A DNA stretch of 64,000 bases, from IMG/VR virus record IMGVR_UViG_3300017917_000952, positions 142,752-206,751 of that record; one strand, given 5' to 3'. The notes beneath the pieces were generated by a model. The model saw only the letters and a program-made list of their open reading frames with translations. It did not search any database and was not told the DNA's origin. The translations under genes were made by a program, and so were the position numbers. This document shows, in pieces, positions 12,001-64,000 of the stretch (the stretch's first letter is position 1; each line of letters starts with the position of its first letter).

Positions 12001-15000
12001 CCAACATACACAAATACTAGCAGCATCTATATTCAAGACGCTAACGTAAGCACAAACCTACGTGGTGGTGTTGCAGGCCAAGTACATTACCAGACTGGTG
12101 CTAACACAAGCGGTTATATTTCAACTGCTACAACAGGTAACTTTCTACAGGCCAACTTCAATGGTGCTCCTACTTGGACCACAACTGCTAACATCTATGT
12201 AGCCAATGCTGCGGTTAGCACAAACCTACGCGGTGGTACACCATATCAGATTCCTTATCAAACTGCTGCGAACACAACAGCATTTGCTAACTCAGGTACA
12301 AGCGGTCAATTCTGGCAAGCAACAACCAATGGCGCACCCGTATGGACCTCAACAGGCAGCATGTATGTTAATCGTGCTGTAAATGCCGATAATGCTACAT
12401 TGGCTATCTCTGCCCAAGTTGCAGACGAAGTAAAAACTTTATCTAGAAGCGACAACGTTAATCGTTATCCTACTTTTGTGTTTGGTAACAATCCCTCGCT
12501 ATCTCCAGAAGGACTTTACACAACTGGCAGTTTCTACGTTAATGCTCAGTCTGGTCTTGTAAATTTAAACAGCCTGTCCGTTAACAATACAGCCTATAGC
12601 ACATCATCCGGTGTTAGTAACGCATTATACGTTGCCGGCGGCGCATTTATTAACGGCGGCCTAACCGTTGCAACAGATGCTCCTGTACTATTCAAGGGCC
12701 CTGTGACCTTTGCCGGTACTGCGACATACGCATACAGTACCAACACTGTATATACTGACAACATCTTAAACTTACACACACCCCCAGGTGGTGTAGGAAC
12801 TGCATGGACCTTAGATGACGGTAAAGACATTGGGTTTGTTTTCCACTACTATAAGAGCGTTGACAAAAACGGATTCTTAGGATTAGGTAACGACTCTGGT
12901 TACTTAGAATGGTATGAAAACGGCACAGAAAGCGGCGGTATATTTACAGGTACAAACTACGGTACATTTAAGACTGCTGCGATCAAACTGGTAGGTGGTA
13001 CTGCTAATGCAGGAAACACATCTACCGGCGACCTAACTGTTCTAGGTGGCGTTGGTGTCGGCGGTAGCGTTTATGTCGGCGGCAACATTACTGTAGCGGG
13101 AACAATTAACGCAAGTATTACAGGTATTTCTACAACAGCAACAAACTTAGCAGGTGGACTGGCGGGCCAGTTACCGTATCAAAGTGCCGCAGGTGTTACA
13201 TCGTTCATTACTACGGCTACTACCGGTAACTTCCTACAGGCCAACTTCAATGGTGCTCCTACTTGGACATCGACGGCTAACATCTACGTTAATCGTGCAA
13301 CACTGGCAGACAGTGCTACTGCTGCAACAACAGCAACAAGTGCGGGTACTGCTTATGCAACAATTGGTACATTAACTGCCGGTACAGGCCTAACAGGTAC
13401 TGCATTCAACGGTAGCGCAAACCAAACCTGGACATTGAACACAGCCACTTATATGGGCAGTGCTGTAACTGCTAATAACTTAGCAGGCGGAACACCGTAT
13501 CAAATACCATATCAAAGTGCGGCTAACACCACACTGTTTGCAAGTTCGGGAACAACCGGCCAGTTCTGGCAAGCAACAACCAATGGTGCACCTGTATGGA
13601 CAACAACGGCTAACATCTACGTTCAAAATTCTGTTCTCTCTACGCACCAACGAGGCGGTGTAGGCGGCCAGTTACAGTATCAAAGTGCAGTTGACACTAC
13701 AGCATTTGTAAGCACTGCAACCACTGGTAACTTCTTACAAGCAAACTTCAACGGCGCACCTACATGGACCACAACTGCTAACATCTATGTGGCTAACGCC
13801 GTAGTCAGTACAAATATTCGAGGCGGCACCAATTGGCAAATTCCGTATCAGAGTGCTGCAAATACTACTGCGTTTGCTAACTCAGGTACTAGTGGTCAGT
13901 TCTGGCAAGCAACAACCAACGGCGCACCTGTATGGACATCGACAGGCAGTATGTATGTTGGTCGTGCTGTAATTGCCGACAGTGCAAGTGGCGGTAGTGC
14001 TCAGGTCAATACTGTAGCACAGCCAACAAACTTTGATTATTTCTTAACATTTGTTGATGCAAACAATGCAAGTGCAGCGGCAGAATTTGTCTACACAACT
14101 AGCAGCATCTATGTAAACCCAAGTGCTGGTAACCTACGTGTATCTGGTATTGTTACTGCAACAACATTTGTCGGTAACGTAACAGGTAACTTAACAGGTA
14201 CAGCAAGTAACGCAACAACAGCAACTAGTGCCGCTACTGCTTACGCAACTATCGGTACACATACCGCCGGCACAGGCCTAAGTGGAACCACATTCAATGG
14301 AAGTGCAAACGTAACCTGGACCTTGAACACTGCTACCTATATGGCCAGTGCCGTAACTGCTAACAACCTAGCAGGTGGTAGTGCAGGTCAATTTGCGTTC
14401 CAGACAGGCGCTGGCGCTACATCTTTTGCATCAACTGGCAGTATGTATGTTGGTCGTGCTGTAATTGCCGACAGTGCAAGTGGTGGTAGTGCTCAGGTCA
14501 ATACTGTTGCACAACCTCTAAGTGCTGATTACTTCTTAACTTTTGTTGATACAAATAACGCAAGTGCAGCAGCAGAAAGTGTTTATACAACCAGTAGCAT
14601 CTACGTAAATCCAAGCGCCGGTAACCTACGTGTATCTGGTATTGTTACTGCAACAACATTTGTTGGAAACTTAACAGGCAATGTAACAGGTAACTTAACT
14701 GGTACTGCTAGCACTGCAACTGCCGCAGGTACTGCCTATGCAACCATTGCGGCACACACCGCTGGCGCAGGTCTAAGCGGATCTACATTCAACGGTAGTA
14801 CTGCGGTAACATGGACTTTAAACACAGCCACTTACATGGCTAGTGCTGTAACTGCTAATAACTTAGCAGCAGGCGCAGCAGGAAGTCTACCGTATCAAAG
14901 TGCGGCAGGTACAACTACTTTCTTAGGTATTGGTACCAGCGGATTTGTATTAACCAGTAACGGTAGTGCTCCTACATGGACAGCACTAAGTGGCCTGAGT

Positions 15001-16647
15001 GCAGGAACAGCAACTACAGCAACAAATGCCGACAATGTAAGAACTGTTCAACAACCTGTTAGTGCAACTTACTACCCTGCGTTTGTTGATTCTAACAACA
15101 GTACAGCAGCATATGAAGCACTATACACAACTAGCTCGTTTAGAATTAATGCATCAAGCGGTCTAGTAAGTATTGCAAACACACTAACCGCAATACCTAA
15201 TACTAATCTAACTATTAGAGCACCGGATTATACGAATACATTCGGTGACGGTCAGTACTTATACTTAATGGCTGGTCAAGGAAGTACTGCGAACGGAATT
15301 GGTAACGGCGGTAACACATATCTACAAGGCGGCCTTGGCGGAACGTCAAGTGGTGCAGGTGGATCAGTAAACATCTCCGGTGGACTATCATATGGTGGCA
15401 TCGGCGGCGCTGTTAACATTCAATCCGGTACCGGCCCGTATGCGTCTGGTGCGATCAACATCACAGTTCCGAGCAATAACTCTGGTTCAACTCAGCCTGG
15501 CGGCGCTGTGACTCTGCAAAGTGGTAGTGCTGCAAGCGGTTCGACTAACCTCGCCGGTGGTAATATTATTCTTTCTGGCGGATTAGGTACAGGAAATGCC
15601 GGAGGCGGTAAACTAGTATTCCATACATATTCTCCAGTAGCATCAGGTACAGGTAACGGAACTTTTGTAGGATCGATGTTTGAAGTTAGTAACACCGGTG
15701 CTGTTGCGTTCGGTGGTTCAAGCAATTACGGGTCTTCAGGACAAATTTTACAAAGTAACGGTAATGCATCGCCTACTTGGGTTAATGCAAGCAGTGTTAC
15801 TGCCGGTGCCGCAACTCAAGTACGAACAACAGCACAGCCAGTTAGCGGAACTTACTACCCGGCCTTTGTTGATAGTAACAATGCGAGCGCGACAGCAGAA
15901 ACTGTTTATACAACCAGCTCGTTTGCAATTAATCCGGGCACTGGATTAGTGTCGATTACTAATACTACATCGGCGGTAAACACAGCAGGCTCACATCTAA
16001 CACTAGCACAGCCAGGTACATCTGGCCAGACTATTATCGGATTCACGTTTAATGGTGCTCCTAGGGCAAGTATTAGAGCAGATTCTACCAACATGGTGTT
16101 TAACACCCAGGGCGGGGATTACTACTTTAATAATGATTTTGGTTCTAGTAGTGTTATCTTTAGAGCAGTTGGCACAACATTTATAACTGGATCTGCAAGT
16201 GGTTCTCAAATTCCTTCTTTAGGAGTAGGAACTGCACCTAGCGGAACAGCAGGTGAAATTCGTGCAACAAACGAAATTACTGCATACTATTCTGATCGTA
16301 GATTAAAAGAAAATGTACAAGTAATCGATAATGCTGTAACAAAAGTTCTATCTCTAAATGGTATTACATACACACCGAACGATCTTGCTGCGAGTTTTGG
16401 CTACGATAAGAATGTTAAACTTGTCGGTCTATTTGCAGACGAAGTTGAAGCAGTACTACCAGAAGCAACTAGACCGGCACCGTTTGACCAAGACGAACAC
16501 GGCAATAGCAAATCCGGTGAAAACTATAAGACTATTCAGTATGAAAAGTTAGTTCCGTTGTTAATTGAAGCAATTAAAGAACAAGAACGCACTATTCAGT
16601 CTCTAAAATCTGAGCTAGATGATATCAAAAAACAATTGGGTAAATAA
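9085..16647 (+). CDS. Giant modular tail fibre (2520 aa) with C-terminal peptidase-S74-type intramolecular chaperone
   Basis: N-terminal LQFRRG (Mtd-N-like); many GQ.PYQ and FNGS..TWTLNTAT repeats; YSDRRLKENV autocleavage motif with terminal coiled coil. Confidence 0.85.
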   Translation: MTSVLQFRRGNTAQNDAFTGAVAEISIDTSTNTLRVHNAVTPGGTFIMPTLRLTNAERLTTTAQVGQFIYVTDNVSAGVAPTWVGDGVTAGGVVAAGGVVSAASTASNLSAGTAGQIPYQTGPGATSFFGPGSAGQFLLSNGTSAPAFTNTLTYSNGSIRVDGTANATSTSTGALIVAGGIGVAGDVYVGGKIVSQQLEIQLTTVTTTLIQTDDVIKTSNTTAAHNATTGALQIAGGIGVGGSIFVAGNVTATTFFGNLTGTASTATAAATAYSTIGTHTAGTGLSGTTFNGSANVTWTLNTATLMQTAVNLNGGAAGSLPYQSAAGATTFLGIGTSGFVLTSNGSAPTWTALSGLSAGLATTASNIAGGLADQIPYQSAPGQTTFNAALRFNGTTFTTTNIVVSGTTNSLSNTSTQGALLVTGGAAIAKDLFVGGDINLQGNLYLKGAGLDQITGSTGTFDYVSIEGTGTGLTVADGVSIGGDTLITKTTAASSTNTGALQVRGGVGIAGGLVVATVVTATNFSGSLSGGTGGAIVYQSAANTTAFLSTSTTGNFLQGNFNGAPTWTSTGSMYVGSSVFAEDIRGGTNGQIVYQISAGNTGFVGPGTTGNLFISGGGGTPSFLATGAAGTFLGSAGSGSAPVWTTTATMYVQNSNVSTNLRGGVAGQLHYQTAADTSGYITTATTGNFLQANFNGAPTWTSTSSMYVNRATLADSATTATSAGTAYATIGTLTAGTGLTGTAFNGSANQTWTLNTATYMASAVTANNLAAGAAGSLPYQTSAGATTFLGIGTSGYVLTSNGTAPTWSALSGLSAGNATTATNLANGLAGQIPYQSGAGSTTFLGTATTGNFLQANFNGAPLWTSSGTMYVNSAVFAEDLYGGSSGQLVYQSNLNTTAFVTTATAGNFLQANGTNAPTWTTTASMHVGAAVTASKIVGGTDGQLVYQISTGVTGFAGPGTAGQLLVSGGTSAPTYTNTSSIYIQDANVSTNLRGGVAGQVHYQTGANTSGYISTATTGNFLQANFNGAPTWTTTANIYVANAAVSTNLRGGTPYQIPYQTAANTTAFANSGTSGQFWQATTNGAPVWTSTGSMYVNRAVNADNATLAISAQVADEVKTLSRSDNVNRYPTFVFGNNPSLSPEGLYTTGSFYVNAQSGLVNLNSLSVNNTAYSTSSGVSNALYVAGGAFINGGLTVATDAPVLFKGPVTFAGTATYAYSTNTVYTDNILNLHTPPGGVGTAWTLDDGKDIGFVFHYYKSVDKNGFLGLGNDSGYLEWYENGTESGGIFTGTNYGTFKTAAIKLVGGTANAGNTSTGDLTVLGGVGVGGSVYVGGNITVAGTINASITGISTTATNLAGGLAGQLPYQSAAGVTSFITTATTGNFLQANFNGAPTWTSTANIYVNRATLADSATAATTATSAGTAYATIGTLTAGTGLTGTAFNGSANQTWTLNTATYMGSAVTANNLAGGTPYQIPYQSAANTTLFASSGTTGQFWQATTNGAPVWTTTANIYVQNSVLSTHQRGGVGGQLQYQSAVDTTAFVSTATTGNFLQANFNGAPTWTTTANIYVANAVVSTNIRGGTNWQIPYQSAANTTAFANSGTSGQFWQATTNGAPVWTSTGSMYVGRAVIADSASGGSAQVNTVAQPTNFDYFLTFVDANNASAAAEFVYTTSSIYVNPSAGNLRVSGIVTATTFVGNVTGNLTGTASNATTATSAATAYATIGTHTAGTGLSGTTFNGSANVTWTLNTATYMASAVTANNLAGGSAGQFAFQTGAGATSFASTGSMYVGRAVIADSASGGSAQVNTVAQPLSADYFLTFVDTNNASAAAESVYTTSSIYVNPSAGNLRVSGIVTATTFVGNLTGNVTGNLTGTASTATAAGTAYATIAAHTAGAGLSGSTFNGSTAVTWTLNTATYMASAVTANNLAAGAAGSLPYQSAAGTTTFLGIGTSGFVLTSNGSAPTWTALSGLSAGTATTATNADNVRTVQQPVSATYYPAFVDSNNSTAAYEALYTTSSFRINASSGLVSIANTLTAIPNTNLTIRAPDYTNTFGDGQYLYLMAGQGSTANGIGNGGNTYLQGGLGGTSSGAGGSVNISGGLSYGGIGGAVNIQSGTGPYASGAINITVPSNNSGSTQPGGAVTLQSGSAASGSTNLAGGNIILSGGLGTGNAGGGKLVFHTYSPVASGTGNGTFVGSMFEVSNTGAVAFGGSSNYGSSGQILQSNGNASPTWVNASSVTAGAATQVRTTAQPVSGTYYPAFVDSNNASATAETVYTTSSFAINPGTGLVSITNTTSAVNTAGSHLTLAQPGTSGQTIIGFTFNGAPRASIRADSTNMVFNTQGGDYYFNNDFGSSSVIFRAVGTTFITGSASGSQIPSLGVGTAPSGTAGEIRATNEITAYYSDRRLKENVQVIDNAVTKVLSLNGITYTPNDLAASFGYDKNVKLVGLFADEVEAVLPEATRPAPFDQDEHGNSKSGENYKTIQYEKLVPLLIEAIKEQERTIQSLKSELDDIKKQLGK

Positions 16648-55767: not shown

Positions 55768-55870
55768 CTATATAGTAAGCAAAAAAATTGCTAAAAAAAA
55801 TTTTTGACTACAGGGAAGCGCAGAGTAGGGAAGTTTTACAGGGCCCGGTCTATATAGTAGCAAAAAATTG
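55768..55870. repeat. Imperfect direct repeat CTATATAGTA(A)GCAAAAAA(A)TTG, two copies, in a non-coding gap
   Basis: Copies at 55768-55790 and 55850-55870. Confidence 0.75.
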
Positions 55871-55971
55871 GGCGCAAAAATAACGAAGGTTTTGGAGATC
55901 TCAACCGACCAGGTTTTACTCTAACACCAACATTTTACGGCATGCTGCTATGCTACTTTAGTATTACTTTT

Positions 55972-56011
55972 AAAAAAGCACCTGACCACCCTCCCCACCC
56001 TGGCCAGGTGC
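55972..56011 (-). terminator. Intrinsic terminator closing the early region
   Basis: Minus strand GCACCTGGCCA-12-TGGTCAGGTGC-TTTTTT, with one G-U pair that forms only on the minus strand. Confidence 0.8.
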
Positions 56012-56020
56012 CCCCACCGT

Positions 56021-56305
56021 TCAATCTTCTTCAACAACCTCACAGTCCCAGCGTTCGTCTGCAGGGTCGTAGCCTTCTTCTATGAGCTCCTGTACAGCGG
56101 CGTTGAACTCTGACTCAAGGTCCCATACAGCAGCCGCTACACGGATGTCCTTCTTGCGGCGTGCCCGTGCTGTGCCTGCTTGATAGACTAGTGGGTAGTG
56201 ATTGGCACAGTAGCTCTTGCCAGGTAGTGTAGGCTTACCGCAGGCGTGTGTGCCCTCGCCCAAGTAGGTACACTCTGTTACTGCTGTGCGCTTATCGTTG
56301 ATCAT
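56021..56305 (-). CDS. GcrA C-terminal-domain-like Cys3His protein
   Basis: C.Y.G.....CG.....GKSYC..H...VY pattern. Confidence 0.5.
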   Translation of the reverse strand: MINDKRTAVTECTYLGEGTHACGKPTLPGKSYCANHYPLVYQAGTARARRKKDIRVAAAVWDLESEFNAAVQELIEEGYDPADERWDCEVVEED

Positions 56306-56513
56306 TGTTGTTGTCCTTAGTGTCCAATTCAGGGTGACGCTTGCGGTACTCTGCTACTTCCTTCTGTATCTGCTCAATGAGCTCTGCTCGTGTCACGTGC
56401 TCTACACAGACAAATAGAGCCAAGATACACCAAAAGCCCCAAGTGTTCCAGTCCTGCCCAACTGCGTCTAACACTAGACCCAATGTAGCGTATAGCGTTA
56501 GACGCAGTAGCAT
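56292..56513 (-). CDS. Small membrane protein
   Basis: Two hydrophobic segments. Confidence 0.6.
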   Translation of the reverse strand: MLLRLTLYATLGLVLDAVGQDWNTWGFWCILALFVCVEHVTRAELIEQIQKEVAEYRKRHPELDTKDNNNDQR

Positions 56514-56514
56514 A

Positions 56515-57396
56515 TTAGCCTCGCTTCATGCAGGTAGTCTGTGCCATAGCAGTCCAAGCCTTGGGGAATGCCTTACGCAGATCCGCAATCTTGAGCACCA
56601 TACGCAGGCTGAGCTCACGCAGGCGGTCCTTGTTCTTGTTGATGAAGTCCAGGACTTCTTGCACAACAACGGGCTCGAACTCGTAGCGGTCCAACATGCC
56701 CTTTTCCACAATGTTCTTGATCCACAGCATCTTTTCACGCTGGGTGTCCATTTCCAAGTCCATGTAGTGGCAACGGCTTTCCAATGCGTCCAAGTGGCTA
56801 CGCAGTTTCTTGCTACGAACGTGCTCGAACTTAATATTAGTGATGAAGATAGCCGCACCCTTGAACTCAAAGCGGTCCGGAATGCCTTCACTGCGAAGGA
56901 TTCGGCTGTCCGTGTTCCACGAGATGAAGCGACGGTTGCCGCTGTCCAGAGCACCCTTGAGGATGTTCAAGCTCAGTTCTTCCTGCAGGATGTCGTCACA
57001 GTCGTCAAAGACTAGGACATGCTTTGAGTCCGAGAACTCGTAGAGCTTACTGTACAGGCCAATGGAGCTCATGGCACCCTTGACAACTTCGAACTTGGGC
57101 TTGCGTTCGCCCAGAGTATCAAACAGGCCGTCCTTTTGCAGTACTGCCTCCACATTGTGACTTTTACCAACGCCGGGAGGGCCGCTGACAATCATAGCAC
57201 GGACATCGCCACGCTTGACAGCCTTGGTCATCTCAGTGAGGATCTCAAAGCGCTCGTTGAGTCGCTCCAGAATTGCTTCGTCGCTTTCTTTGGCGATGCT
57301 GGCTTCTTTGGCTGCAATTGCATCGGTGTCCAGCTCAATGACGTTGCTGGTAACAGTGGCCTTGCTGGGCTTGCGAGCGGCGGAGGTACGTGCCAT
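56515..57396 (-). CDS. P-loop / AAA+ ATPase
   Basis: GPPGVGKS, VLVFDDCD, IFITN and ALESR motifs. Confidence 0.85.
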   Translation of the reverse strand: MARTSAARKPSKATVTSNVIELDTDAIAAKEASIAKESDEAILERLNERFEILTEMTKAVKRGDVRAMIVSGPPGVGKSHNVEAVLQKDGLFDTLGERKPKFEVVKGAMSSIGLYSKLYEFSDSKHVLVFDDCDDILQEELSLNILKGALDSGNRRFISWNTDSRILRSEGIPDRFEFKGAAIFITNIKFEHVRSKKLRSHLDALESRCHYMDLEMDTQREKMLWIKNIVEKGMLDRYEFEPVVVQEVLDFINKNKDRLRELSLRMVLKIADLRKAFPKAWTAMAQTTCMKRG

Positions 57397-57427
57397 TTGT
57401 GTTCCTTAGTGTGTTGTTGAAGTGTGT

Positions 57428-57456
57428 ATTATACTGTCGAAGGGCCTGTCTGTCAA
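57428..57456 (-). promoter_or_regulatory. Early promoter P1, TTGACA-17-TATAAT, with CA-rich leader and TAAGGA
   Basis: Exact consensus; GAAGGGC/GCCCTTC inverted repeat around the -35. Confidence 0.85.
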
Positions 57457-57473
57457 GCCCTTCTGCACTACAA

Positions 57474-57815
57474 TCAGTCCAGACGCGAACCAGCGTAGGC
57501 TTCGAAGCCATACTTGCGGAACACGTCAGCCGCGGCCTGTGCACCTGCTTCCAGAATGCCCACAGATTGGACGGGCAGTTTGGCAGGGTTCCACAGTTGG
57601 AAGGCCTTGGTGTAGTCTTGACGCACACCAGCGGCTTTCAGCATCTTGCCCAACTTGGTGTTGCCTTTGATCTTGTAGATGTTGGTCCAAGCAAAGCCGC
57701 AGGCATCACGATCACCGTACTTAGCCAGGGCGTCACGAGCAGCCTTGTTGGCTTCTTGCATGGCTTCGGCAACGATTGCGTTCACTTGCTCTTGGGTCAG
57801 GGTCAGTTGGGTCAT
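57474..57815 (-). CDS. Hypothetical early protein (DACGFAW motif)
   Basis: Own promoter and AAGGAG RBS. Confidence 0.75.
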   Translation of the reverse strand: MTQLTLTQEQVNAIVAEAMQEANKAARDALAKYGDRDACGFAWTNIYKIKGNTKLGKMLKAAGVRQDYTKAFQLWNPAKLPVQSVGILEAGAQAAADVFRKYGFEAYAGSRLD

Positions 57816-57847
57816 CTAGTGCTCCTTAGTGCGTTGTTGATGTGTGT

Positions 57848-57876
57848 ATTATACGGGTTTTTGGATGACCCGTCAA
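57848..57876 (-). promoter_or_regulatory. Early promoter P2, TTGACG-17-TATAAT
   Basis: Shared leader ending TAAGGAGCA. Confidence 0.85.
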
Positions 57877-57885
57877 CCACTAAGG

Positions 57886-58101
57886 TTAATCCTTTTTGTT
57901 GGTGATGTGGCTTTTAAACAACAGGCCGCAGAGCAGGCTAAGACCCCAGGCCTGTAGCCAGGTGATCTCCGGGAGCTTGAAGATCGACGGAATCACAGCG
58001 TCCCACAGTAGCATCACGGGCAAGGCCAGCAGGAAGCTCAGGAGTACGATCAGGGCGATGCCTGCGATCACAGTTGCGATGATGGTGCCTAGTGCGTTCA
58101 T
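57886..58101 (-). CDS. Small two-TM membrane protein
   Basis: Hydrophobic; LW....P..F.LP.IT..QA.GL..L motif. Confidence 0.7.
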   Translation of the reverse strand: MNALGTIIATVIAGIALIVLLSFLLALPVMLLWDAVIPSIFKLPEITWLQAWGLSLLCGLLFKSHITNKKD

Positions 58102-58343
58102 TTGCTGACTTTCTTGATCAGTTGGTTGGCCACGGTCATGTCGGAGTTGATGCCGTCATAGCATTGTTCGACGATGCTCATGATCATGAGGTCTACGATG
58201 CTCTTGGCTTCGTTGCGAAGTTTCTTTGTGGGCAGACCGTTGATGAATCGATCAACATCTGCTTTGTCGTTGCAGGCCCAGATGATGTCAGCCAGGACTC
58301 GTTGCTGGGCGTTGAGCCCTTCGATGGTGAACTCTACGCTCAT
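58098..58343 (-). CDS. Hypothetical early protein
   Basis: GAGGAG RBS; ATGA coupling. Confidence 0.7.
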   Translation of the reverse strand: MSVEFTIEGLNAQQRVLADIIWACNDKADVDRFINGLPTKKLRNEAKSIVDLMIMSIVEQCYDGINSDMTVANQLIKKVSK

Positions 58344-58346
58344 TGC

Positions 58347-58544
58347 TTACTCCTCGTTGATCAGGCTAACACCGAACAGGCCCAGCATGGCGCAGGTCAC
58401 TGCGGCACCAGCAAGGGCGAACCACTCTTTGAATCCTGCTTCGGGCGGCAGGTTCTCAACACCGCCAGCGACACCCATGAACCCGATGATGCAGAGGACC
58501 ACTGCCACTGCGCCGATGTTTTTGACCTTTTGCTTGAATTCCAT
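58347..58544 (-). CDS. Small two-TM membrane protein
   Basis: Own promoter and RBS; two hydrophobic segments. Confidence 0.7.
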   Translation of the reverse strand: MEFKQKVKNIGAVAVVLCIIGFMGVAGGVENLPPEAGFKEWFALAGAAVTCAMLGLFGVSLINEE

Positions 58545-58570
58545 TGTGTGCTCCTTGTTGCGATGTATGT

Positions 58571-58599
58571 ATTATAAGGCCGATTGGCCTCAGTGTCAA
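58571..58599 (-). promoter_or_regulatory. Early promoter P3, TTGACA-17-TATAAT
   Basis: The -35 contains the TGA stop of the upstream gene; 28-bp leader identical to P8. Confidence 0.85.
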
Positions 58600-58829
58600 C
58601 CCCAGTTCTTCTTGTCGCCGAACTGTTCGTTGTCACGGTAGCCTGCGGTGTAGGCTGCGATTTCTTCTGCGGTCATGCAGGCCATCTCAACCCGCGGGCT
58701 GGTCATCGTTGCACCCACATAGAAGTGAGGGTTGAAAGGACGGCCGTAGTAGGAATCGGCACTGCCACGATCGTAAGGGCCACCGTGGCGTTCATCATAG
58801 CCCGCTTTGTTCATCTCTTGCATCAGCAT
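58596..58829 (-). CDS. Hypothetical early protein (HGGPYDRGSADSYY motif)
   Basis: Own promoter and RBS. Confidence 0.75.
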   Translation of the reverse strand: MLMQEMNKAGYDERHGGPYDRGSADSYYGRPFNPHFYVGATMTSPRVEMACMTAEEIAAYTAGYRDNEQFGDKKNWG

Positions 58830-58857
58830 CTCTGCTCCTTTGTGTGTCTATGTGTGT

Positions 58858-58886
58858 ATTATACGATCAAAACGGCACGTCGTCAA
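58858..58886 (-). promoter_or_regulatory. Early promoter P4, TTGACG-17-TATAAT
   Basis: The -35 is encoded by the F-D-D codons of the upstream gene. Confidence 0.8.
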
Positions 58887-59097
58887 ACTCGTATTGTTCG
58901 TCGTACCAGTTGTCGTTGGTCTGGGGCGTCAGGACCGTGTCAACATGAACGGTGCCCAGGCTTTGCAGTTCCTGGATCTCCTGCTTGATTTCAGCACGGC
59001 GGGCATCAATCTTAGCATTGGACTCAGGGTCCAGTTCGCCAGCGATCTCGTCCAGGTAGATCAGTTCTTCGTACAGGTTGTTGATCTCGTCTTGCAT
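58867..59097 (-). CDS. Acidic early protein with SSB-Ct-like tail (EFDDVPF)
   Basis: Own promoter and RBS; C-terminus resembles bacterial SSB DFDDDIPF. Confidence 0.7.
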   Translation of the reverse strand: MQDEINNLYEELIYLDEIAGELDPESNAKIDARRAEIKQEIQELQSLGTVHVDTVLTPQTNDNWYDEQYEFDDVPF

Positions 59098-59123
59098 CGT
59101 GTGCTCCTTGTTGTGATGTGTGT

Positions 59124-59153
59124 ATTATACACTCGCAATGGCTGACAGAGCAA
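59124..59153 (-). promoter_or_regulatory. Early promoter P5, TTGCTC-18-TATAAT
   Basis: The -10 contains the TAA stop of the upstream gene; shared leader. Confidence 0.7.
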
Positions 59154-59238
59154 CCATAATCCAGATGGCAATCAGTTGAGCGATGCCAAAGTAGAACATG
59201 GCCCAAACCACTGTACAAAAACCAATGATCTTCAACAT
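59125..59238 (-). CDS. 37-aa membrane peptide (MLKIIGFC...IASV)
   Basis: TAAGGAG RBS; entirely hydrophobic; 3' part of ORF 59125..59427. Confidence 0.6.
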   Translation of the reverse strand: MLKIIGFCTVVWAMFYFGIAQLIAIWIMVALSAIASV

Positions 59239-59248
59239 CGTGCTCTCC

Positions 59249-59563
59249 TTAGCGGCAGACTTGACCGTAGAACTGACCTTGCTGGGTGTAGAGGGGGAAG
59301 CAACCGTTGGGCGCAGGGTAGGCAGGGCTATACTGCGGCAGGGTGCGAACTTCGGGCTGTTGGTACACAGGCGCAGGCAGGGTCTGCGTCTGTTGATAGA
59401 CAACCTGCGGCTGAGGCTGAACAACAACCTGCGGGCGGCTCATCTGTTGGTAGATCCAGTAGCCTGCAACACCAGCCAGGGCGCCTTGTTCACGGGGACC
59501 CCAAGCCAGTGCAGAACCTGTGGCTGTGATTGCGATCAAACCTGCTACGATTGCCTTTTTCAT
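59249..59563 (-). CDS. Secreted/periplasmic Pro-Gln-rich protein
   Basis: Signal peptide MKKAIVAGLIAITATGSALA; own promoter and RBS. Confidence 0.7.
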   Translation of the reverse strand: MKKAIVAGLIAITATGSALAWGPREQGALAGVAGYWIYQQMSRPQVVVQPQPQVVYQQTQTLPAPVYQQPEVRTLPQYSPAYPAPNGCFPLYTQQGQFYGQVCR

Positions 59564-59594
59564 CTTGAGCTCCTTTTTCGCTGTCGATGTGTGT

Positions 59595-59623
59595 ATTATA
59601 CGGCCGTTGGAAAAACCTGTCAA
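59595..59623 (-). promoter_or_regulatory. Early promoter P6, TTGACA-17-TATAAT
   Basis: Exact consensus; upstream AACCCT motif. Confidence 0.85.
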
Positions 59624-59626
59624 CCT

Positions 59627-59971
59627 TTAGGGTTGTTGTTTTTCTGCCACATGCTTGCACTGACCGCGGAACTTGAACCCAGGACAGGTACAGGACCAAA
59701 CGCCATCTTCTTCAGTGAGGTAATACTTCTCGCCACGACTGCCCTCTACGGTGATCACGCCCGGGTCCACGGTTGGAGTGCCTTCTTCAAGCTCAACAAA
59801 GGTCCTGCCTCGCGTGTCGAGCTTCAAGGGGTTCTTGAACTTGAACAACTTCTTAGAACCTCTGGGCACATAGGCCACAGCCTGCGTCATCGAGTCGTTC
59901 ATCACGTAGACGTGGTTGCAGTTCTGACCAAAGCCGTCAGTCCAAGTAGTGGTCTCAAGCATTATCTTCAT
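59627..59971 (-). CDS. SWIM zinc-finger protein (leaderless)
   Basis: WSCTCPGF.FR..CKHV motif; ATG 6 nt after TATAAT. Confidence 0.8.
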   Translation of the reverse strand: MKIMLETTTWTDGFGQNCNHVYVMNDSMTQAVAYVPRGSKKLFKFKNPLKLDTRGRTFVELEEGTPTVDPGVITVEGSRGEKYYLTEEDGVWSCTCPGFKFRGQCKHVAEKQQP

Positions 59972-59977
59972 GACTGT

Positions 59978-60006
59978 ATTATACGGTCAATCGATCTGGA
60001 TGTCAA
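59978..60006 (-). promoter_or_regulatory. Early promoter P7, TTGACA-17-TATAAT-6-ATG (leaderless)
   Basis: The -35 lies inside the V-D codons of the upstream gene. Confidence 0.8.
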
Positions 60007-60172
60007 CCAAGCGGCCTTCGCGGAAGATGAAGTATTCGTTGATCATGCCGTAGTAGGCCCAGATGCAGTCGTTGCCCGGGACCAGGGTGTAGCTCTTGAT
60101 CCCTCGCTTTTCATAGTGCTCTGCAACCAGAAGGACTTCCAGTTCGTTTAGGCTAGGGTCAATTCGGATCAT
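59987..60172 (-). CDS. Hypothetical early protein
   Basis: 61 aa; ATGA coupling. Confidence 0.65.
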   Translation of the reverse strand: MIRIDPSLNELEVLLVAEHYEKRGIKSYTLVPGNDCIWAYYGMINEYFIFREGRLVDIQID

Positions 60173-60384
60173 GCTCGCTCCATCATTCTCATCAGTTCAT
60201 TGTGCAGGTAGCCCATTTCCTCGTGCTCCACATAGAAGTCAGTACGGGGATCCCAGTAGCGACCTTCCTTCGGATCGTAGTACAGAACACGACCACCTGC
60301 GAACACGAACGGTCCTTCGAGGCCTTTGCGTGGGCCGTAGCCCTGGAGCAGTTCTTCCGTCTTACCAAGCACCTTGTATCCCAT
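60169..60384 (-). CDS. Hypothetical early protein (GLEGPF...LYYDPKEG.Y.DP.TD motif)
   Basis: Own promoter and RBS. Confidence 0.75.
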   Translation of the reverse strand: MGYKVLGKTEELLQGYGPRKGLEGPFVFAGGRVLYYDPKEGRYWDPRTDFYVEHEEMGYLHNELMRMMERA

Positions 60385-60410
60385 AGTCTGCTCCTTGTTG
60401 CGATGTATGT

Positions 60411-60439
60411 ATTATATCACCAATTGGAGTGCCTGTCAA
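60411..60439 (-). promoter_or_regulatory. Early promoter P8, TTGACA-17-TATAAT
   Basis: The -35 and spacer lie in the upstream coding sequence; its stop abuts the -10. Confidence 0.85.
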
Positions 60440-60764
60440 CCTCTTCTTGCGTGAATTGCCCGCCGCTACGGTCGGGATTTGCGGCCCAACTCTCCTGCAA
60501 TCTGCGCTCGCGCTCTGCTTCGTGCTTAGGGTCAATGTAGGCACTGTCCAGCAAGAGTTGATAGGCCAACTTCTCCAGGTTTGAGGGCATGTCGCCCATG
60601 GCTACACGGTTAGGAATCCGCTCCAGTTCGTCGATGCACTTCTGCACGAAGTCCACATGCATCTCAATGCCCACACTGTGCATAGGACGAAGCAGAACGA
60701 CGGGAGCAGTGCCCTTGGGTTGCAGGTTAGCCCTAAGGCGTTGGATGATGTCTTGGTCTTTCAT
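60417..60764 (-). CDS. Hypothetical early protein
   Basis: 115 aa; C-terminal SW..NPDRSGGQFT.EE motif. Confidence 0.65.
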   Translation of the reverse strand: MKDQDIIQRLRANLQPKGTAPVVLLRPMHSVGIEMHVDFVQKCIDELERIPNRVAMGDMPSNLEKLAYQLLLDSAYIDPKHEAERERRLQESWAANPDRSGGQFTQEEVDRHSNW

Positions 60765-60925
60765 ACGTTCACCTGTAAGACAACAGTTTCGTCGTCGTAT
60801 TCGTTAGCCTCGAAGTGATCCACCTGCTCTACATCGTAGATCTCTCCGCCCATGTTGTCATTAACTTCGACCAAGCAATCCTGCGGCATGGTCTTCAGGA
60901 TCTTGATCAGTTCTGCTACAGTCAT
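60761..60925 (-). CDS. 54-aa acidic hypothetical protein (MTVAELIKIL...), not in the ORF track
   Basis: Manually translated open frame; AAGGA RBS; ATGA coupling. Confidence 0.65.
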   Translation of the reverse strand: MTVAELIKILKTMPQDCLVEVNDNMGGEIYDVEQVDHFEANEYDDETVVLQVNV

Positions 60926-60926
60926 T

Positions 60927-61115
60927 TCAACGGTCCTTCAGTCGCTTCATGACCTTGAGCAGGTCGGGGTTGTTTTTGATCTTCTCCATAGCAGCCTCTT
61001 GCCGCTCCCACAGCAGGCGCTCGGCTTCAGTTTCCAGATTGTTGGCATAGTGGCCGTTGCCGCGATTCTGATCCTGCTTCTGCCACTTTGCGATCTGCTT
61101 CTTGGAAACTTTCAT
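60927..61115 (-). CDS. Hypothetical early protein
   Basis: Start MKVSKK after AAGGAGCA and promoter P9. Confidence 0.7.
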   Translation of the reverse strand: MKVSKKQIAKWQKQDQNRGNGHYANNLETEAERLLWERQEAAMEKIKNNPDLLKVMKRLKDR

Positions 61116-61142
61116 CGTCTGCTCCTTGCTGTCTATGTGTGT

Positions 61143-61184
61143 ATTATACCTTCTTTTGGATAACCCGTCAACCAAACGGGTTAT
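61143..61184 (-). promoter_or_regulatory. Early promoter P9, TTGACG-17-TATAAT, with 9-bp inverted repeat ATAACCCGT/ACGGGTTAT
   Basis: Repeat arms at 61160-68 and 61176-84. Confidence 0.85.
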
Positions 61185-61309
61185 TCGCTCCAAACGGGTT
61201 CGAAGGTGTAGCCCTTTTGCTGATAGTAGAGTCCATCGAAACTCTGCCAATCGCGGATGGGGATTACCAGTCCCAACTCTACTACACGGTAAGCAACAAT
61301 CGTCTTCAT
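61181..61309 (-). CDS. 42-aa hypothetical protein (leaderless)
   Basis: TATAAT-ACACAC-ATG; MKTIVAYR... Confidence 0.6.
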   Translation of the reverse strand: MKTIVAYRVVELGLVIPIRDWQSFDGLYYQQKGYTFEPVWSE

Positions 61310-61315
61310 GTGTGT

Positions 61316-61345
61316 ATTATACAGTCTCTTTGGCAGTTTGGACAA
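61316..61345 (-). promoter_or_regulatory. Early promoter P10, TTGTCC-18-TATAAT-6-ATG (leaderless)
   Basis: The -10 contains the upstream TAA stop. Confidence 0.7.
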
Positions 61346-61457
61346 CCGAATTGTCAAACAATGTGCCACCGTAGGCCTGCTGGAATGTCTGGGCAGTGGC
61401 CAGCAGGTAGAACTGATAGACGCGGCCGGTAGGAGTGATCAGTGTGTACTTCATCAT
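61317..61457 (-). CDS. 46-aa hypothetical protein (MMKYTLITPTGRVYQFY...), not in the ORF track
   Basis: Manually translated; TAATG overlap with the upstream gene; ends in the P10 -10 box. Confidence 0.6.
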   Translation of the reverse strand: MMKYTLITPTGRVYQFYLLATAQTFQQAYGGTLFDNSVVQTAKETV

Positions 61458-61641
61458 TACTTCTCGATTTTAACGCAAATGGGGGTCTTGATGTTCATGC
61501 CCCAGCGGAGATCGTCAACGGCCTTGTAGACAACCTTAGCGGCTGCTTCGCACTTTTCTTTAGTAGTGTGAACTCAGGGCCCATGTTCCAGTTGCTACCA
61601 GTGCCTACTACAATCATGACCCAAACAACCATTGCGTTCAT
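61457..61641 (-). pseudogene. Small exported/membrane protein gene with a frameshift near 61566-61570
   Basis: Removing 2 nt (AC) joins MNAMVV...GPEF to TTKEKCEAAAK...ICVKIEK*, whose stop overlaps the next ATG. Confidence 0.6.
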
Positions 61642-61668
61642 CGTGTGCTCCTTACTGTCTATGCATGT

Positions 61669-61711
61669 ATTATAACACCGTTTTGGATAACCCGTCAACC
61701 ACTAGGGTTAT
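61669..61711 (-). promoter_or_regulatory. Early promoter P11, TTGACG-18-TATAAT, with ATAACCC-11-GGGTTAT
   Basis: 21 bp identical to P9. Confidence 0.8.
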
Positions 61712-61717
61712 AGAGTC

Positions 61718-61751
61718 AAAAGAATAGGGCGGCTCTCCCGAGCGGCCCTAT
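61718..61751 (-). terminator. Intrinsic terminator with GGGA tetraloop
   Basis: ATAGGGC-C-GCTC-GGGA-GAGC-C-GCCCTAT-TCTTTT. Confidence 0.75.
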
Positions 61752-61823
61752 CCAACACTAACACGGCTGAGGGAGCAACTCAACCGGCCCGGGACACTAC
61801 CCCCGGGACTTCGGAGCAACCAA
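61718..61823 (-). ncRNA. Candidate structured 3'-UTR/small RNA with two GUUGCUCC anti-SD motifs
   Basis: Three hairpins, two with G-U pairs that form only on the minus strand; no ORF; ends in a terminator. Confidence 0.4.
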
Positions 61824-62093
61824 TTAAGCGAGGCCTAACTGGATGGCACGGTAACCAGCGGCAACAACACGACGGCTGGGCATACCGATTTCATATTCGG
61901 TAACAGTAACACCATTACCAGCCTTGCGAGTGTTTGCATAAACAGCATAACCTGCTTGACGGATACGGCTTGCCTCTGCGGCAACGTTCTTGATACCGAA
62001 ACGCTTCTGTGCTTCAGAAGCAGTAACTTTCTCACCACTCTTCAATGCGGTCAGCATCTTGAATGTCTTTGTACCTTGATTGATCTTCAACAT
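61824..62093 (-). CDS. Winged helix-turn-helix DNA-binding protein
   Basis: L.AL.SG...T..EA..RFG..N..A..S.IR..GY pattern; CAAGGA RBS. Confidence 0.75.
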   Translation of the reverse strand: MLKINQGTKTFKMLTALKSGEKVTASEAQKRFGIKNVAAEASRIRQAGYAVYANTRKAGNGVTVTEYEIGMPSRRVVAAGYRAIQLGLA

Positions 62094-62109
62094 TTTCTTT
62101 TCCTTGTTT

Positions 62110-62162
62110 TTAGACTGCTGTGCAGTTGATATAATAGTACAGCAGTCTAAGGTCAAGGTCAA
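62110..62162 (-). promoter_or_regulatory. Promoter P12 (TTGACC-17-TACTAT) with 12-bp perfect inverted repeat TTAGACTGCTGT/ACAGCAGTCTAA, operator-like
   Basis: Arms at 62110-21 and 62139-50 flank the -10 and start site; the -35 contains the upstream TGA. Confidence 0.7.
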
Positions 62163-62377
62163 GCATCAATCTTGCCAAATTCTTTTTGTGTGTAGTATTG
62201 GTTTAACCTACGCTGAATCATCGTAAGCAGATCACCGTGATCGTCCGAAACAATGAATCGGACAGGGCAACGGCCCCAGGTGTTGTGCTTGACGAATTCA
62301 AAATACCATTTGCGGTGCTGACGATTCGTCTCGTCAAAAGCCACCCAAGGTCTACCAACGAATGCTAATCTGCTCAT
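62159..62377 (-). CDS. Hypothetical protein (RP.V.FD..N..HR...W..CPVRF motif)
   Basis: GGAG RBS. Confidence 0.7.
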   Translation of the reverse strand: MSRLAFVGRPWVAFDETNRQHRKWYFEFVKHNTWGRCPVRFIVSDDHGDLLTMIQRRLNQYYTQKEFGKIDA

Positions 62378-62467
62378 CTGTTTGCTCCAGTGAATATCCC
62401 GCTGTATTGTGTAGATACCCGGTCTTACGGCACTCTGGCCCGCCGGGCGCCTTCACACGGCAGTAAC

Positions 62468-62884
62468 TTAGAACGGAGCGTCTTCCAGTTGTGCTTCGAC
62501 TTCAGCCTTGGAAACAACAGTTTCTTTGACAGCGGTCTTAGCCTTAGCAGCCTTGGCCTTTGCCTTGATAGCGTCCATAGACGGCTTGGACTTCTTGGCA
62601 GGAGCCTTGGCCTTAGGTGCAGCCTTAGCAGCCTTAGGGGTCTCGGTGCGCTTCTCAACCTCTGCTTCGATAGCGGCACGAACTGCGGCATTGCCGTTGT
62701 CAAAGTTGATCTGAAGCAGGAATGCCACAGCCTCGTCTTTGGTCATCGGATGCTTGAGCTCGATGATATCAATGTCCTTGTGGCCGTTCTTGGCCAGGAC
62801 CTTAACACGCATCTGATCATTAGCAAAGCGAGCCTTGATCTTGCCGTTGAGAGTAGAAACACCTGCGAACTTGAATGTAGACAT
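62468..62884 (-). CDS. Protein with histone-H1-like Ala/Lys/Pro tail ending LEDAPF
   Basis: AKAAPKAKAPAKK repeats; AAGGAG RBS. Confidence 0.75.
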   Translation of the reverse strand: MSTFKFAGVSTLNGKIKARFANDQMRVKVLAKNGHKDIDIIELKHPMTKDEAVAFLLQINFDNGNAAVRAAIEAEVEKRTETPKAAKAAPKAKAPAKKSKPSMDAIKAKAKAAKAKTAVKETVVSKAEVEAQLEDAPF

Positions 62885-62944
62885 GAAAATCTCCTTGTGT
62901 GTATGTCTGTGAATGTCTGCGTCATTACCTAACGCATTAATAAT

Positions 62945-62973
62945 AGTTTAACGTCTTTGGACAGGTTTGTCAA
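62945..62973 (-). promoter_or_regulatory. Promoter P13, TTGACA-17-TAAACT; leader has a 5' hairpin
   Basis: Leader hairpin UGCGUUA-5-UGACGCA followed by a CA-rich tract. Confidence 0.7.
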
Positions 62974-62983
62974 CCAAAATGTG

Positions 62984-63169
62984 TCAAGAGTTTAGTGTGT
63001 TGTATGGGCTAAGTTCATCCTCCTGTGGCGAATCTGCCACACCAAAACTTTCCAGAACCTCGAGCACCGTTTCGATTGGGCAGTTCAGTTCTGCGGCAAT
63101 CCGTTTGGCACTCAGGCCGTCAATGTACAGTTGTTCAATGTCGTACAGTAGCTCTGCAACCTTGCTCAT
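62984..63169 (-). CDS. Small HTH-like protein
   Basis: G.SA..IA..L.CP...V..V pattern. Confidence 0.6.
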   Translation of the reverse strand: MSKVAELLYDIEQLYIDGLSAKRIAAELNCPIETVLEVLESFGVADSPQEDELSPYNTLNS

Positions 63170-63552
63170 TCTTCGTTCTCCATTGCTTGAAACTCAAAAG
63201 CCTCGCTCAGCAGTCCGTCAAACTCACCGTAGAACTCCACGTACCAACGGCCGTCGCGACGCAGGATATAGTTGTATTCTTCGAACTGGCCGTTCTTGCG
63301 ATAGTCAGCATAGTCCTTAAACATACGCTGAGGGCAGTCCTCGCCGCGTTCCTTGTAGAACTCACAGCCGTCAACGGTCTCGCTCAGCGTAGACATGTCG
63401 CCGTTGTCCAGCAGTTCGCGGACTTCGAACGGATCGGTGTAGGCATTCAGCAGGATCTTGCCGTTGTGATCCAGGTAGCCATCCCAGTGGCAGTAGATTT
63501 GACCCACGGTACCGTCTGCGTATTCCAGGGCGATCATGCTTCGTGTTGCCAT
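63166..63552 (-). CDS. Hypothetical phage early protein (M.TRS.I...YCHWDGY family)
   Basis: Own promoter and RBS. Confidence 0.75.
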   Translation of the reverse strand: MATRSMIALEYADGTVGQIYCHWDGYLDHNGKILLNAYTDPFEVRELLDNGDMSTLSETVDGCEFYKERGEDCPQRMFKDYADYRKNGQFEEYNYILRRDGRWYVEFYGEFDGLLSEAFEFQAMENEE

Positions 63553-63586
63553 TTGCGTTGCTCCTTAGTGCGTTGTCGATGTGCTA

Positions 63587-63615
63587 ATTATACAGTGGTT
63601 TTACCAACCTGTCAA
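63587..63615 (-). promoter_or_regulatory. Early promoter P14, TTGACA-17-TATAAT
   Basis: Leader shares 18 bp with P2. Confidence 0.85.
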
Positions 63616-63619
63616 CCAA

Positions 63620-63763
63620 TTACTTGGCCTTTTTGGCGGGCTTCTGCTTGGCTTCCTGGGCAGCAATCTTGCCACTGTAGGCACTGCCGGCCTTGTGGAT
63701 CAGACCAGTCTTGGTGAAAGTGATAGTGCCGCCAGTGCTAGAAGGAATAGTTTTGCCGATCAT
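63620..63763 (-). CDS. 47-aa basic hypothetical protein
   Basis: Start MIGKT after GGAGCA and P15. Confidence 0.65.
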   Translation of the reverse strand: MIGKTIPSSTGGTITFTKTGLIHKAGSAYSGKIAAQEAKQKPAKKAK

Positions 63764-63794
63764 TGTGTGCTCCAATTGCGTTGTTGATGTGTGT

Positions 63795-63823
63795 ATTATA
63801 GCAGGACTTCTAAGCCCTGTCAA
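63795..63823 (-). promoter_or_regulatory. Early promoter P15, TTGACA-17-TATAAT
   Basis: Exact consensus; TAACCCTAG motif upstream. Confidence 0.85.
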
Positions 63824-63832
63824 CTACTAGGG

Positions 63833-64000
63833 TTAATCTAGCAGGCACTTGACCACAATAGCAGGGCCGTAGGCCCAAGGACCATTACCGCCATCAGTGA
63901 CCTTGACATTCTCAGCGCCTGCGGCCTTTTGCAGAGCGATAAGCAGATTGGTGTTGTTGCGGAAGTAGCACTTGACACGGCGCTCCGTGCCAGTGTGGGC
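63833..64000 (-). CDS. 3' part of a hypothetical protein running off the window edge
   Basis: Open frame ...RRVKCYF...KCLLD*; its stop is the TAA of the TAACCC motif. Confidence 0.55.
   Translation of the reverse strand, partial: AHTGTERRVKCYFRNNTNLLIALQKAAGAENVKVTDGGNGPWAYGPAIVVKCLLD

Follow-up and report, generated by a model that had tools for sequence, protein, structure and literature searches.

A conserved RNA element after a small phage regulator gene carries the complements of early-leader motifs: a candidate anti-leader RNA

In the viral record IMGVR_UViG_3300017917_000952, a small gene encoding a wHTH protein is followed by 105 noncoding bases that appear to fold on the gene strand and to carry words complementary to the ribosome-binding sites (RBSs) of neighboring genes. 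A sequence-only reading of this DNA had proposed that the stretch is a 3'UTR-derived small RNA whose anti-Shine-Dalgarno seeds and GU-rich linker could coordinately silence the many early mRNAs sharing one leader. The question raised by the locus is whether this stretch is a real RNA element and, if so, whether it is directed at those leaders. The analysis covered a window of 64,000 nucleotides, the last 64 kb of a 206,751-bp viral contig from a pond metagenome; coordinates below are those of the window. The contig belongs to a myovirus with tail sheath, large terminase, and DnaB-like helicase genes, and searches for DNA similarity to cultured phages returned nothing. The sequence observation was confirmed in every statement, whereas its interpretation was only partly supported: the core idea, anti-Shine-Dalgarno and GU-rich words aimed at the shared early leader, is supported by comparative evidence, but a discrete trans-acting RNA and actual repression were not shown.

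From about 56 to 64 kb, the minus strand of the window carries an array of small genes with a G+C content of 50 to 53%, compared with 37 to 47% for the rest of the window. Seventeen sigma-70-like promoter sites were found, all on the minus strand, against 4.3 expected, and 10 of these are exact TTGAC-N18-TATAAT matches. The leaders that follow are short and near-identical, reading ACACACAUCGACAAC(GCACUAA)GGAGCA(C/G)AC..AUG. The wHTH gene (61824 to 62093, minus strand, 89 aa; Pfam HTH_39, E 6e-7) differs from its neighbors, as its own RBS is AAGGAAAAG rather than GGAGC. Its promoter (TTGACC-17-TACTAT; 62105 to 62162, minus strand) is distinct from the other early promoter-leader cassettes and overlaps a perfect 10-bp inverted repeat, AGACTGCTGT / ACAGCAGTCT, which folds as a hairpin in RNA; ACAGCAGT is conserved upstream of wHTH in relatives.

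The stop codon of the wHTH gene lies at 61824 to 61826, and the next 106 nt on the minus strand fold with a minimum free energy (MFE) of -52.1 kcal/mol (z -2.55; 2 of 200 shuffles were as good). Four nucleotides after the stop codon, a first copy of motif A, GUUGCUCC (61813 to 61820), is single stranded and is the complement of GGAGCAAC. It is followed by hairpin 1 (motif B), CCCGGGG-GUAGUG-UCCCGGG (61788 to 61807), in which UAGUGU (61794 to 61799) is the complement of the leader block ACACUA. Hairpin 2, CGGUUGAG-UUGCUCC-CUCAGCCG (61764 to 61786), has an 8-bp stem that presents UUGCUCC (61772 to 61778) as its loop, giving the second copy of GUUGCUCC at 61772 to 61779. A single-stranded GU-rich linker, UGUUAGUGUUG (motif C; 61753 to 61763), contains UUAGUGU, the complement of the leader block ACACUAA. 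The element closes with a G+C-rich hairpin (61724 to 61751) followed by the U-tract UCUUUU (61718 to 61723), which together have the features of an intrinsic (Rho-independent) terminator on the transcribed strand, and the next early promoter starts at 61698. The full 8-nt complement of motif A occurs once, in a leader at 63557 to 63564, and ten early-gene RBSs on the minus strand read GGAGCA.

Within the window alone, these facts are not statistically unusual. The possibility that such short matches arise by chance had been raised in advance by the sequence-only reading, and the 8-mer was indeed found 3 times against 1.67 expected, with 27 of 100 shuffles reaching 3; neither GTTGCTCC nor the composite ACACTA..GGAGC was significant on its own. 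A naive count of hairpins with GCTCC in the loop against control words did not discriminate, because too many background hairpins arise when G.U pairs are allowed. Thermodynamics also does not select the strand, since the plus strand gives z -3.38. Strand assignment rests instead on G.U pairs (an invariant G.U closing hairpin 1 and five G.U pairs in hairpin 2 homologues), on the U-tract, and on the finding that all 30 covariance-model hits lie on the gene strand. That the feature is real is shown by its conservation in relatives.

Loss of the loop motif in relatives had been named beforehand as grounds for rejecting the idea, and the motif was found to be conserved. Eighty loci encoding wHTH homologues (55 to 100% identity) were collected without reference to the RNA, and in 28 of these the exact word GGTAGTGTCC lies within about 30 nt of the stop codon, always on the gene strand (28 sense copies, 0 antisense). 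Most also carry [UC]GCUCC a few bases after the stop. A pattern scan then showed that the composite element is widespread in IMG/VR, including after unrelated genes, again on the gene strand and with GCUCC beginning 4 to 12 nt (mode, 6) after the stop codon. The element is thus one member of an undescribed, modular RNA family with at least 59 distinct variants in uncultivated freshwater phages, widespread in lake, pond, and estuary viromes. Stems differ between lineages, whereas three motifs are conserved: YGCUCC, single stranded or in a hairpin loop; GGUAGUGU, in a hairpin loop; and UUAGUG. The modules are a single-stranded YGCUCC, a hairpin with the invariant apex GGGGUAGUGUCCC (motif B), optionally a hairpin with ..YGCUCC as its loop, optionally UGUUAGUG (motif C; conserved in the related loci L002, L003, L008, L028, L056, L089, and L131), and, after wHTH genes, the terminator hairpin. 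A second architecture (type II) nests motif B in a longer helix and is not a terminator. No Rfam family matched, either for the whole window at the gathering threshold or for the region at an E value of 10, a tRNA/tmRNA scan gave nothing, and a literature search for the motif returned only unrelated primer hits. A tblastn search with the wHTH protein found only Pelagibacter phage HTVC008M, at 39% identity, so no cultured carrier is known, and a scan of bacterial genomes for the composite motif gave one 3.1-kb contig in a metagenome-assembled genome, probably phage, which did not identify a host.

Comparison among relatives indicates that these words are presented by RNA structure. Homologues of hairpin 2 in 11 lineages have stems that all differ, yet all 85 pairs are standard or G.U and the loop is always ..YGCUCC. 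Six full-length relatives give 9 pairs with compensatory double changes. For hairpin 1, the closing G.U pair is present in 21 of 21 aligned rows, the outer pair switches from U-A to C-G, and the covariation score exceeds all 500 shuffles. An alternative helix proposed by RNAalifold, pairing the single-stranded GCUCC with GGGGU of motif B, involves two invariant sides, so nothing supports or refutes it; the hairpin 1 fold is more stable and has covariation. These observations bear on the possibility that the motifs act as double-stranded DNA sites, in which a DNA-binding protein, for instance the wHTH protein itself, would recognize ACACTAA and GGAGCA in early leaders as a roadblock just downstream of early promoters and bind the same words, inverted, behind its own gene. 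The same words do occur in both orientations, the adjacent gene does encode a winged-helix protein, and the two GTTGCTCC copies are direct repeats 41 bp apart. However, the words are embedded in hairpins whose stems covary and contain G.U pairs valid on one strand only, the element also follows unrelated genes, and the palindrome at the wHTH promoter is a better operator candidate, making this explanation very unlikely.

The terminator hairpin is itself unusual, with a GNRA tetraloop (GGGA, 61736 to 61739), four pairs, and then a conserved C.C mismatch at the fifth position (C61744/C61731). This shape occurs once in the window, and in the 80 related loci it occurs only on the gene strand and only right after the wHTH element (11 distinct, 0 antisense); the C.C mismatch is present in 12 of 18 distinct hairpins. 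Another explanation, also considered very unlikely, is that the element is an ordinary terminator region inside a mobile promoter/stem-loop cassette, as in the shuffling cassettes of T4-type phages, and that the anti-leader words are functionless remnants of an inverted leader copy. The array does consist of repeated promoter-leader cassettes, a terminator is present, and the plus strand of the element reads as two tandem pseudo-leaders. In contrast, relatives with 61 to 90% wHTH identity have replaced every stem base yet keep the loop words exactly, no other part of a leader or promoter is retained in inverted form, type II copies are not terminators, and the GNRA/C.C hairpin is specific to this site rather than a generic terminator.

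The conserved words correspond to the leaders of the early genes. In 468 distinct promoter-defined leaders collected from 82 related loci, the four 6-mers present in the most leaders are AGGAGC (253), ACACTA (249), CACTAA (209), and GGAGCA (200). Their reverse complements, GCUCCU, UAGUGU, UUAGUG, and UGCUCC, are the conserved words of the element, and the order is collinear for antiparallel pairing, as the element reads 5'-GCUCC..UAGUGU-3' and the leader reads 5'-ACACUA..GGAGC-3'. On the gene strand, TAGTGT, GCTCC, and CGCTCC are 15-, 15-, and 73-fold denser, respectively, in the 130 nt after the wHTH stop than elsewhere in the loci. The base after GGAG in leaders is C in 308 cases, T in 38, A in 22, and G in 1; pairing with the ribosomal CCUCC would favor G, whereas pairing with GCUCC requires C, so that the target position is not explained by 16S pairing. 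The target is also class specific, as 36 of 41 large non-early genes of the window have no GGAG at all, whereas 13 of 17 GGAG sites in the array are GGAGC. All 31 wHTH relatives with a callable start site use GGAA-type RBSs (AAGGAAA or AGAGGAAA type), and none has GGAGC.

Cofolding of the element with translation initiation regions gave net binding energies of -11 to -18 kcal/mol for ten of the eleven GGAGC leaders, the exception being the GGAGCU leader at 59563 (-6.3). Early initiation regions without a GGAGC or GGAAC block gave 0 to -8, wHTH itself gave -3.9, and late genes averaged -6.3. RNAduplex on full-length RNAs was less informative, producing messy structures with large loops and no significant difference between early and late genes (p 0.22). 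The best predicted binding, -17.7 kcal/mol, is to the leader block CACUAAGGAGCAAC (63557 to 63570) of the gene starting at 63552, which matches motif A over 8 nt and also motif C. The other candidate targets, all on the minus strand, include the GGAGCA sites at 63768 to 63773 (gene starting at 63763; -14.2 kcal/mol), 61646 to 61651 (gene starting at 61641, the first after the terminator; -13.9), 61120 to 61125 (61115; -13.5), 60389 to 60394 (60384; -10.9), 59102 to 59107 (59097; -12.4), 58833 to 58838 (58829; -13.6), and 58549 to 58554 (58544; -12.8). Two further candidates are the leader block CACUAAGGAGCA (57820 to 57831), downstream of the promoter at 57876, and the GGAGCA(AAC) site at 62383 to 62388 of the gene starting at 62377. 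In this window only 3 of 11 leaders carry CACUAA.

Pairing may occur within the same transcript. No minus-strand terminator separates the upstream promoters (63823, 63615, and 62973) from the element, and long early transcripts therefore end with it. The gene starting at 62377 lies upstream of wHTH with no intervening terminator, and both the MFE and the centroid structures of the 706-nt dicistronic RNA (62420 to 61715) pair its leader GGAGCAA with GUUGCUCC at 61820 to 61813. Type II carrier genes do have GGAGC leaders, and whole-mRNA folds of two of them pair leader and 3' word, in the centroid for locus L148 and in both MFE and centroid for locus L125. The monocistronic wHTH mRNA, by contrast, has no matching site in its own RBS, so that the findings for a 5'-3' fold-back differ between transcripts and do not settle whether the element belongs to that type. 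The seven GGAGCA leaders downstream of the element belong to a second unit that ends at a plain terminator (about 55975 to 56018) with no anti-leader word; if the element is what selects their GGAG-C, it must reach them in trans, a step that is inferred.

Accumulation of the RNA was another point on which the sequence-only reading had asked to be judged. One freshwater metatranscriptome holds near-identical contigs over 61745 to 62066, covering wHTH plus most of the element, at a depth of 8 to 27. It also covers the upstream genes but holds nothing over 61219 to 61686, beyond the terminator. The contigs run from the coding part into the element (61745 to 61868), where depth is lower than in the coding part, and they carry no information on ends; no promoter-like site lies inside the 3' part of the gene. 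There was no sign of a separately abundant small RNA, but such libraries underrepresent small RNAs, and the data do not decide for or against a discrete species. The unevenness of coverage argues for RNA rather than contaminating DNA and for termination at the predicted site.

Not every feature of the family fits leader pairing. The complementary blocks are short (5 to 8 nt), and in about 13 relatives with the simple architecture the single-stranded copy is UCGCUCC while the leaders read GGAGCA, giving only 5 bp and leaving the conserved U and C unexplained. In the pairing view, genomes with AUUCGCUCC loops would have GGAGCGAA leaders, genomes with motif B would have ACACUA leaders, and genomes without any element would lose the GGAG-C bias. 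Genomes without motif B do tend to have AUUCGCUCC loops and GGAGCGA(A) leaders (7 to 8 bp), and genomes with motif B have more ACACUA leaders (48% against 20%). Own-genome complementarity also beats cross-genome complementarity (11 of 10,000 permutations). However, one related clade drives these trends, and an independent-pairs test of motif-leader covariation had no power, with only 2 starred branches on an 89-residue wHTH tree that is too poorly resolved; genome-by-genome covariation was thus not separated from phylogeny. The AAGU spacer and the GNRA/C.C hairpin are likewise conserved for reasons that the pairing model does not give.

These unexplained positions leave room for the element to be a site for a phage or host factor, such as a nut-like site that modifies elongation just before a terminator or a processing or stability module, with complementarity to the leaders being incidental. 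The conserved box, [UC]GCUCC(N)AAG, shares YGCUC with boxA (lambda CGCUCUUA; consensus CGCUCUUA / UGCUCUUUAACAA), is followed 4 to 5 nt later by a hairpin with an invariant loop, and sits right after a small HTH gene and before a terminator, as lambda nutR (boxA plus boxB) sits between cro and tR1. The boxA match, however, covers only 5 of 8 positions, the loop GGUAGUGU is not boxB-like, and the element lies at the 3' end of the transcription unit rather than in a promoter-proximal position; no N-like protein was looked for. Complementarity to the leaders has no counterpart in nut sites, and a protein-binding role does not explain why both conserved motifs are the reverse complements of the two commonest leader blocks in collinear order, why C after GGAG is near absolute in leaders, or why the carrier gene avoids GGAGC. 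This explanation is possible but unlikely. Resemblance to the RfaH ops element (GGCGGTAGnnTG, in the leader of a long operon) was considered and dropped, as GGGGGTAGTGTC matches 10 of 12 positions but lacks C3 and lies after a gene, inside a covarying hairpin. Resemblances to the tRNA D-arm and acceptor and to 16S helix 45 were dropped because defining positions do not match.

The stretch is best explained, with a probability of roughly 0.55, as the 3' untranslated end of the wHTH mRNA, and of longer early transcripts that run into it, acting as a conserved, modular anti-leader RNA. It holds two tandem units, each with one complement of the early ribosome-binding block (GUUGCUCC against GGAGCAAC) and one complement of the CA-rich leader block (UAGUGU or UUAGUGU against ACACUA(A)), and in each unit one motif is single stranded and the other sits in a hairpin loop. 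Base pairing with the short, near-identical leaders of the sigma-70-driven early mRNAs would cover the Shine-Dalgarno sequence and compete with the ribosome's CCUCC, and would therefore lower translation, and probably stability, of the early class. Mid and late genes, which lack the motif, would be spared, as would the carrier gene. Pairing could take place in cis, on leaders of upstream cistrons of the same transcript, or in trans, on leaders of the second early transcription unit; for part of the targets, a cis fold-back is at least as well supported as a discrete trans-acting small RNA. The structure, the conservation, the complementarity, and the class specificity of the target motif are demonstrated by the analysis, whereas it is by inference that pairing is held to occur in the cell, to repress, and to be divided between cis and trans. 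The GNRA/C.C hairpin has no role in this model.

A bolder reading, which is not excluded but is unlikely on present evidence, is that a whole clade of uncultivated freshwater phages times its early program with an RNA instead of a protein. In this view, early leaders have evolved GGAG-C, never GGAG-G, plus an ACACUAA block so that a phage-made anti-leader RNA, carried on the 3' end of a regulator mRNA that is itself immune, outcompetes the ribosome's anti-Shine-Dalgarno sequence and shuts off or throttles all early mRNAs at once, as an RNA counterpart of T4 RegB/RegA. Phage early-to-middle switching is known mainly through proteins, by promoter shutoff, RegB cleavage, and RegA repression. If the element works as proposed, it would be a conserved RNA that recognizes the common leader of an entire temporal class, a new and compact way to control dozens of genes with about 100 nt, and it would explain the strongly selected C after GGAG in 308 of 369 leaders. 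Describing the family would add a phage RNA class.

Occlusion of the Shine-Dalgarno sequence by a complementary RNA and regulation from 3'UTRs are known mechanisms; what is new here is the address (a whole temporal class of phage mRNAs), the two-word modular design, and the apparent tuning of the leaders away from the ribosome's anti-Shine-Dalgarno sequence. The icaR 3'UTR (PMC3868564) likewise places a C-rich anti-Shine-Dalgarno word in the long 3'UTR of a small regulator gene, where pairing with the Shine-Dalgarno region blocks initiation, and the cis pairing predicted here in whole-transcript folds resembles that mechanism. The phage element has no sequence relation to icaR, its carrier gene's own RBS lacks the target, its candidate targets are other cistrons and a class of about 10 or more mRNAs with a shared leader, and it has two motif types in two tandem units; RNase III involvement was not examined. 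As in the 3'UTR-derived trans-acting small RNAs of enterobacteria, such as CpxQ and SroC, the element lies on the gene strand, shares the terminator of its parent mRNA, and has a conserved, accessible seed at the 5' single-stranded end just after the stop codon, with seed conservation exceeding that of the stems. It differs in that there is no evidence yet for a processed species, in that the seed matches the phage's own mRNAs rather than host mRNAs, and in that no host chaperone has been identified; regulation of targets, which in such RNAs usually involves Hfq or ProQ, was not assayed. The c4 antisense RNA of phages P1 and P7 is also a phage RNA with two short complementary blocks in loop and single-stranded positions that pairs with a leader, hides a ribosome-binding site, and is made from the same transcript as its target. 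The element did not match the Rfam C4 family, however, and c4 controls one operon (icd-ant) in immunity, whereas the element here would address a whole array of early genes in lytic phages. The functional logic is shared with the T4 RegB endoribonuclease (PMC3014915), which inactivates early mRNAs as a class through a word in their Shine-Dalgarno region (GGAG), sparing most middle and all late mRNAs; RegB is a protein nuclease, whereas the effector proposed here is an RNA complement of the word, and the discriminating position is the C after GGAG.

The terminator hairpin at 61724-61751 on the minus strand has a GNRA tetraloop, four pairs, and then a conserved C.C mismatch, features that are shared with the related loci L003, L010, L012, L019, L021, L059-L061, L073, and L074. 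This hairpin was found only at this site and only on the gene strand, and no function is assigned to it. Between positions 61794 and 61820 on the same strand, RNAalifold proposed an alternative helix between the single-stranded UUGCUCC and GGGGUAG of motif B that includes three G.U pairs; there was no covariation either way, but, if real, this helix would make the two seeds mutually masking. In the type II elements of loci L116, L125, L148, and L170, the 3' strand of the outer stem and its flank are C-rich, with CCUCC or CCCUCCCCU runs, which are further anti-SD-like words. The only hit for the composite motif in bacterial genomes was a 3,125-bp contig (JBIKUX010000066.1; locus L200) binned into a Bdellovibrionota MAG from a lake sample, which is probably a mis-binned phage contig rather than a clue to the host.

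The promoter of the wHTH gene (62105-62162, minus strand) overlaps a perfect 10-bp inverted repeat, AGACTGCTGT / ACAGCAGTCT. The sequence ACAGCAGT is conserved upstream of the wHTH genes in the related loci L081, L100, L108, L121, and L171, and this is probably an autoregulatory operator. The early gene at 61309-61345 (minus strand) appears to be leaderless, as its promoter (TTGTCC-18-TATAAT) is followed by ACACAC and then by the ATG; a similar case was seen in L081 at position 8051. In the stretch 55770-56020 (minus strand), the second early unit ends at a strong plain terminator (GCACCTGGCC..GGTCAGGTGC plus T6), which is followed by two copies of TTGCT(T)ACTATATAG in AT-rich DNA, possibly representing a phage-specific (middle?) promoter for the 54966-55733 gene.

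There is a sharp step in composition between positions 1-56000 and 56000-64000 of the window, with the early array having 50-53% G+C and the rest of the window having 37-47%. The structural genes include a very long open reading frame of 2,520 amino acids (9085-16647, plus strand), which was not examined, and most of the non-early genes (36/41) have no GGAG Shine-Dalgarno sequence. Upstream of many of these genes, including those with plus-strand starts at 27416, 31240, 32832, 46038, 51441, and others, there is a (TA)TAAATA sequence ending 8 to 12 nt before the ATG. This arrangement looks like that of T4-type late promoters, which would give almost leaderless mRNAs.
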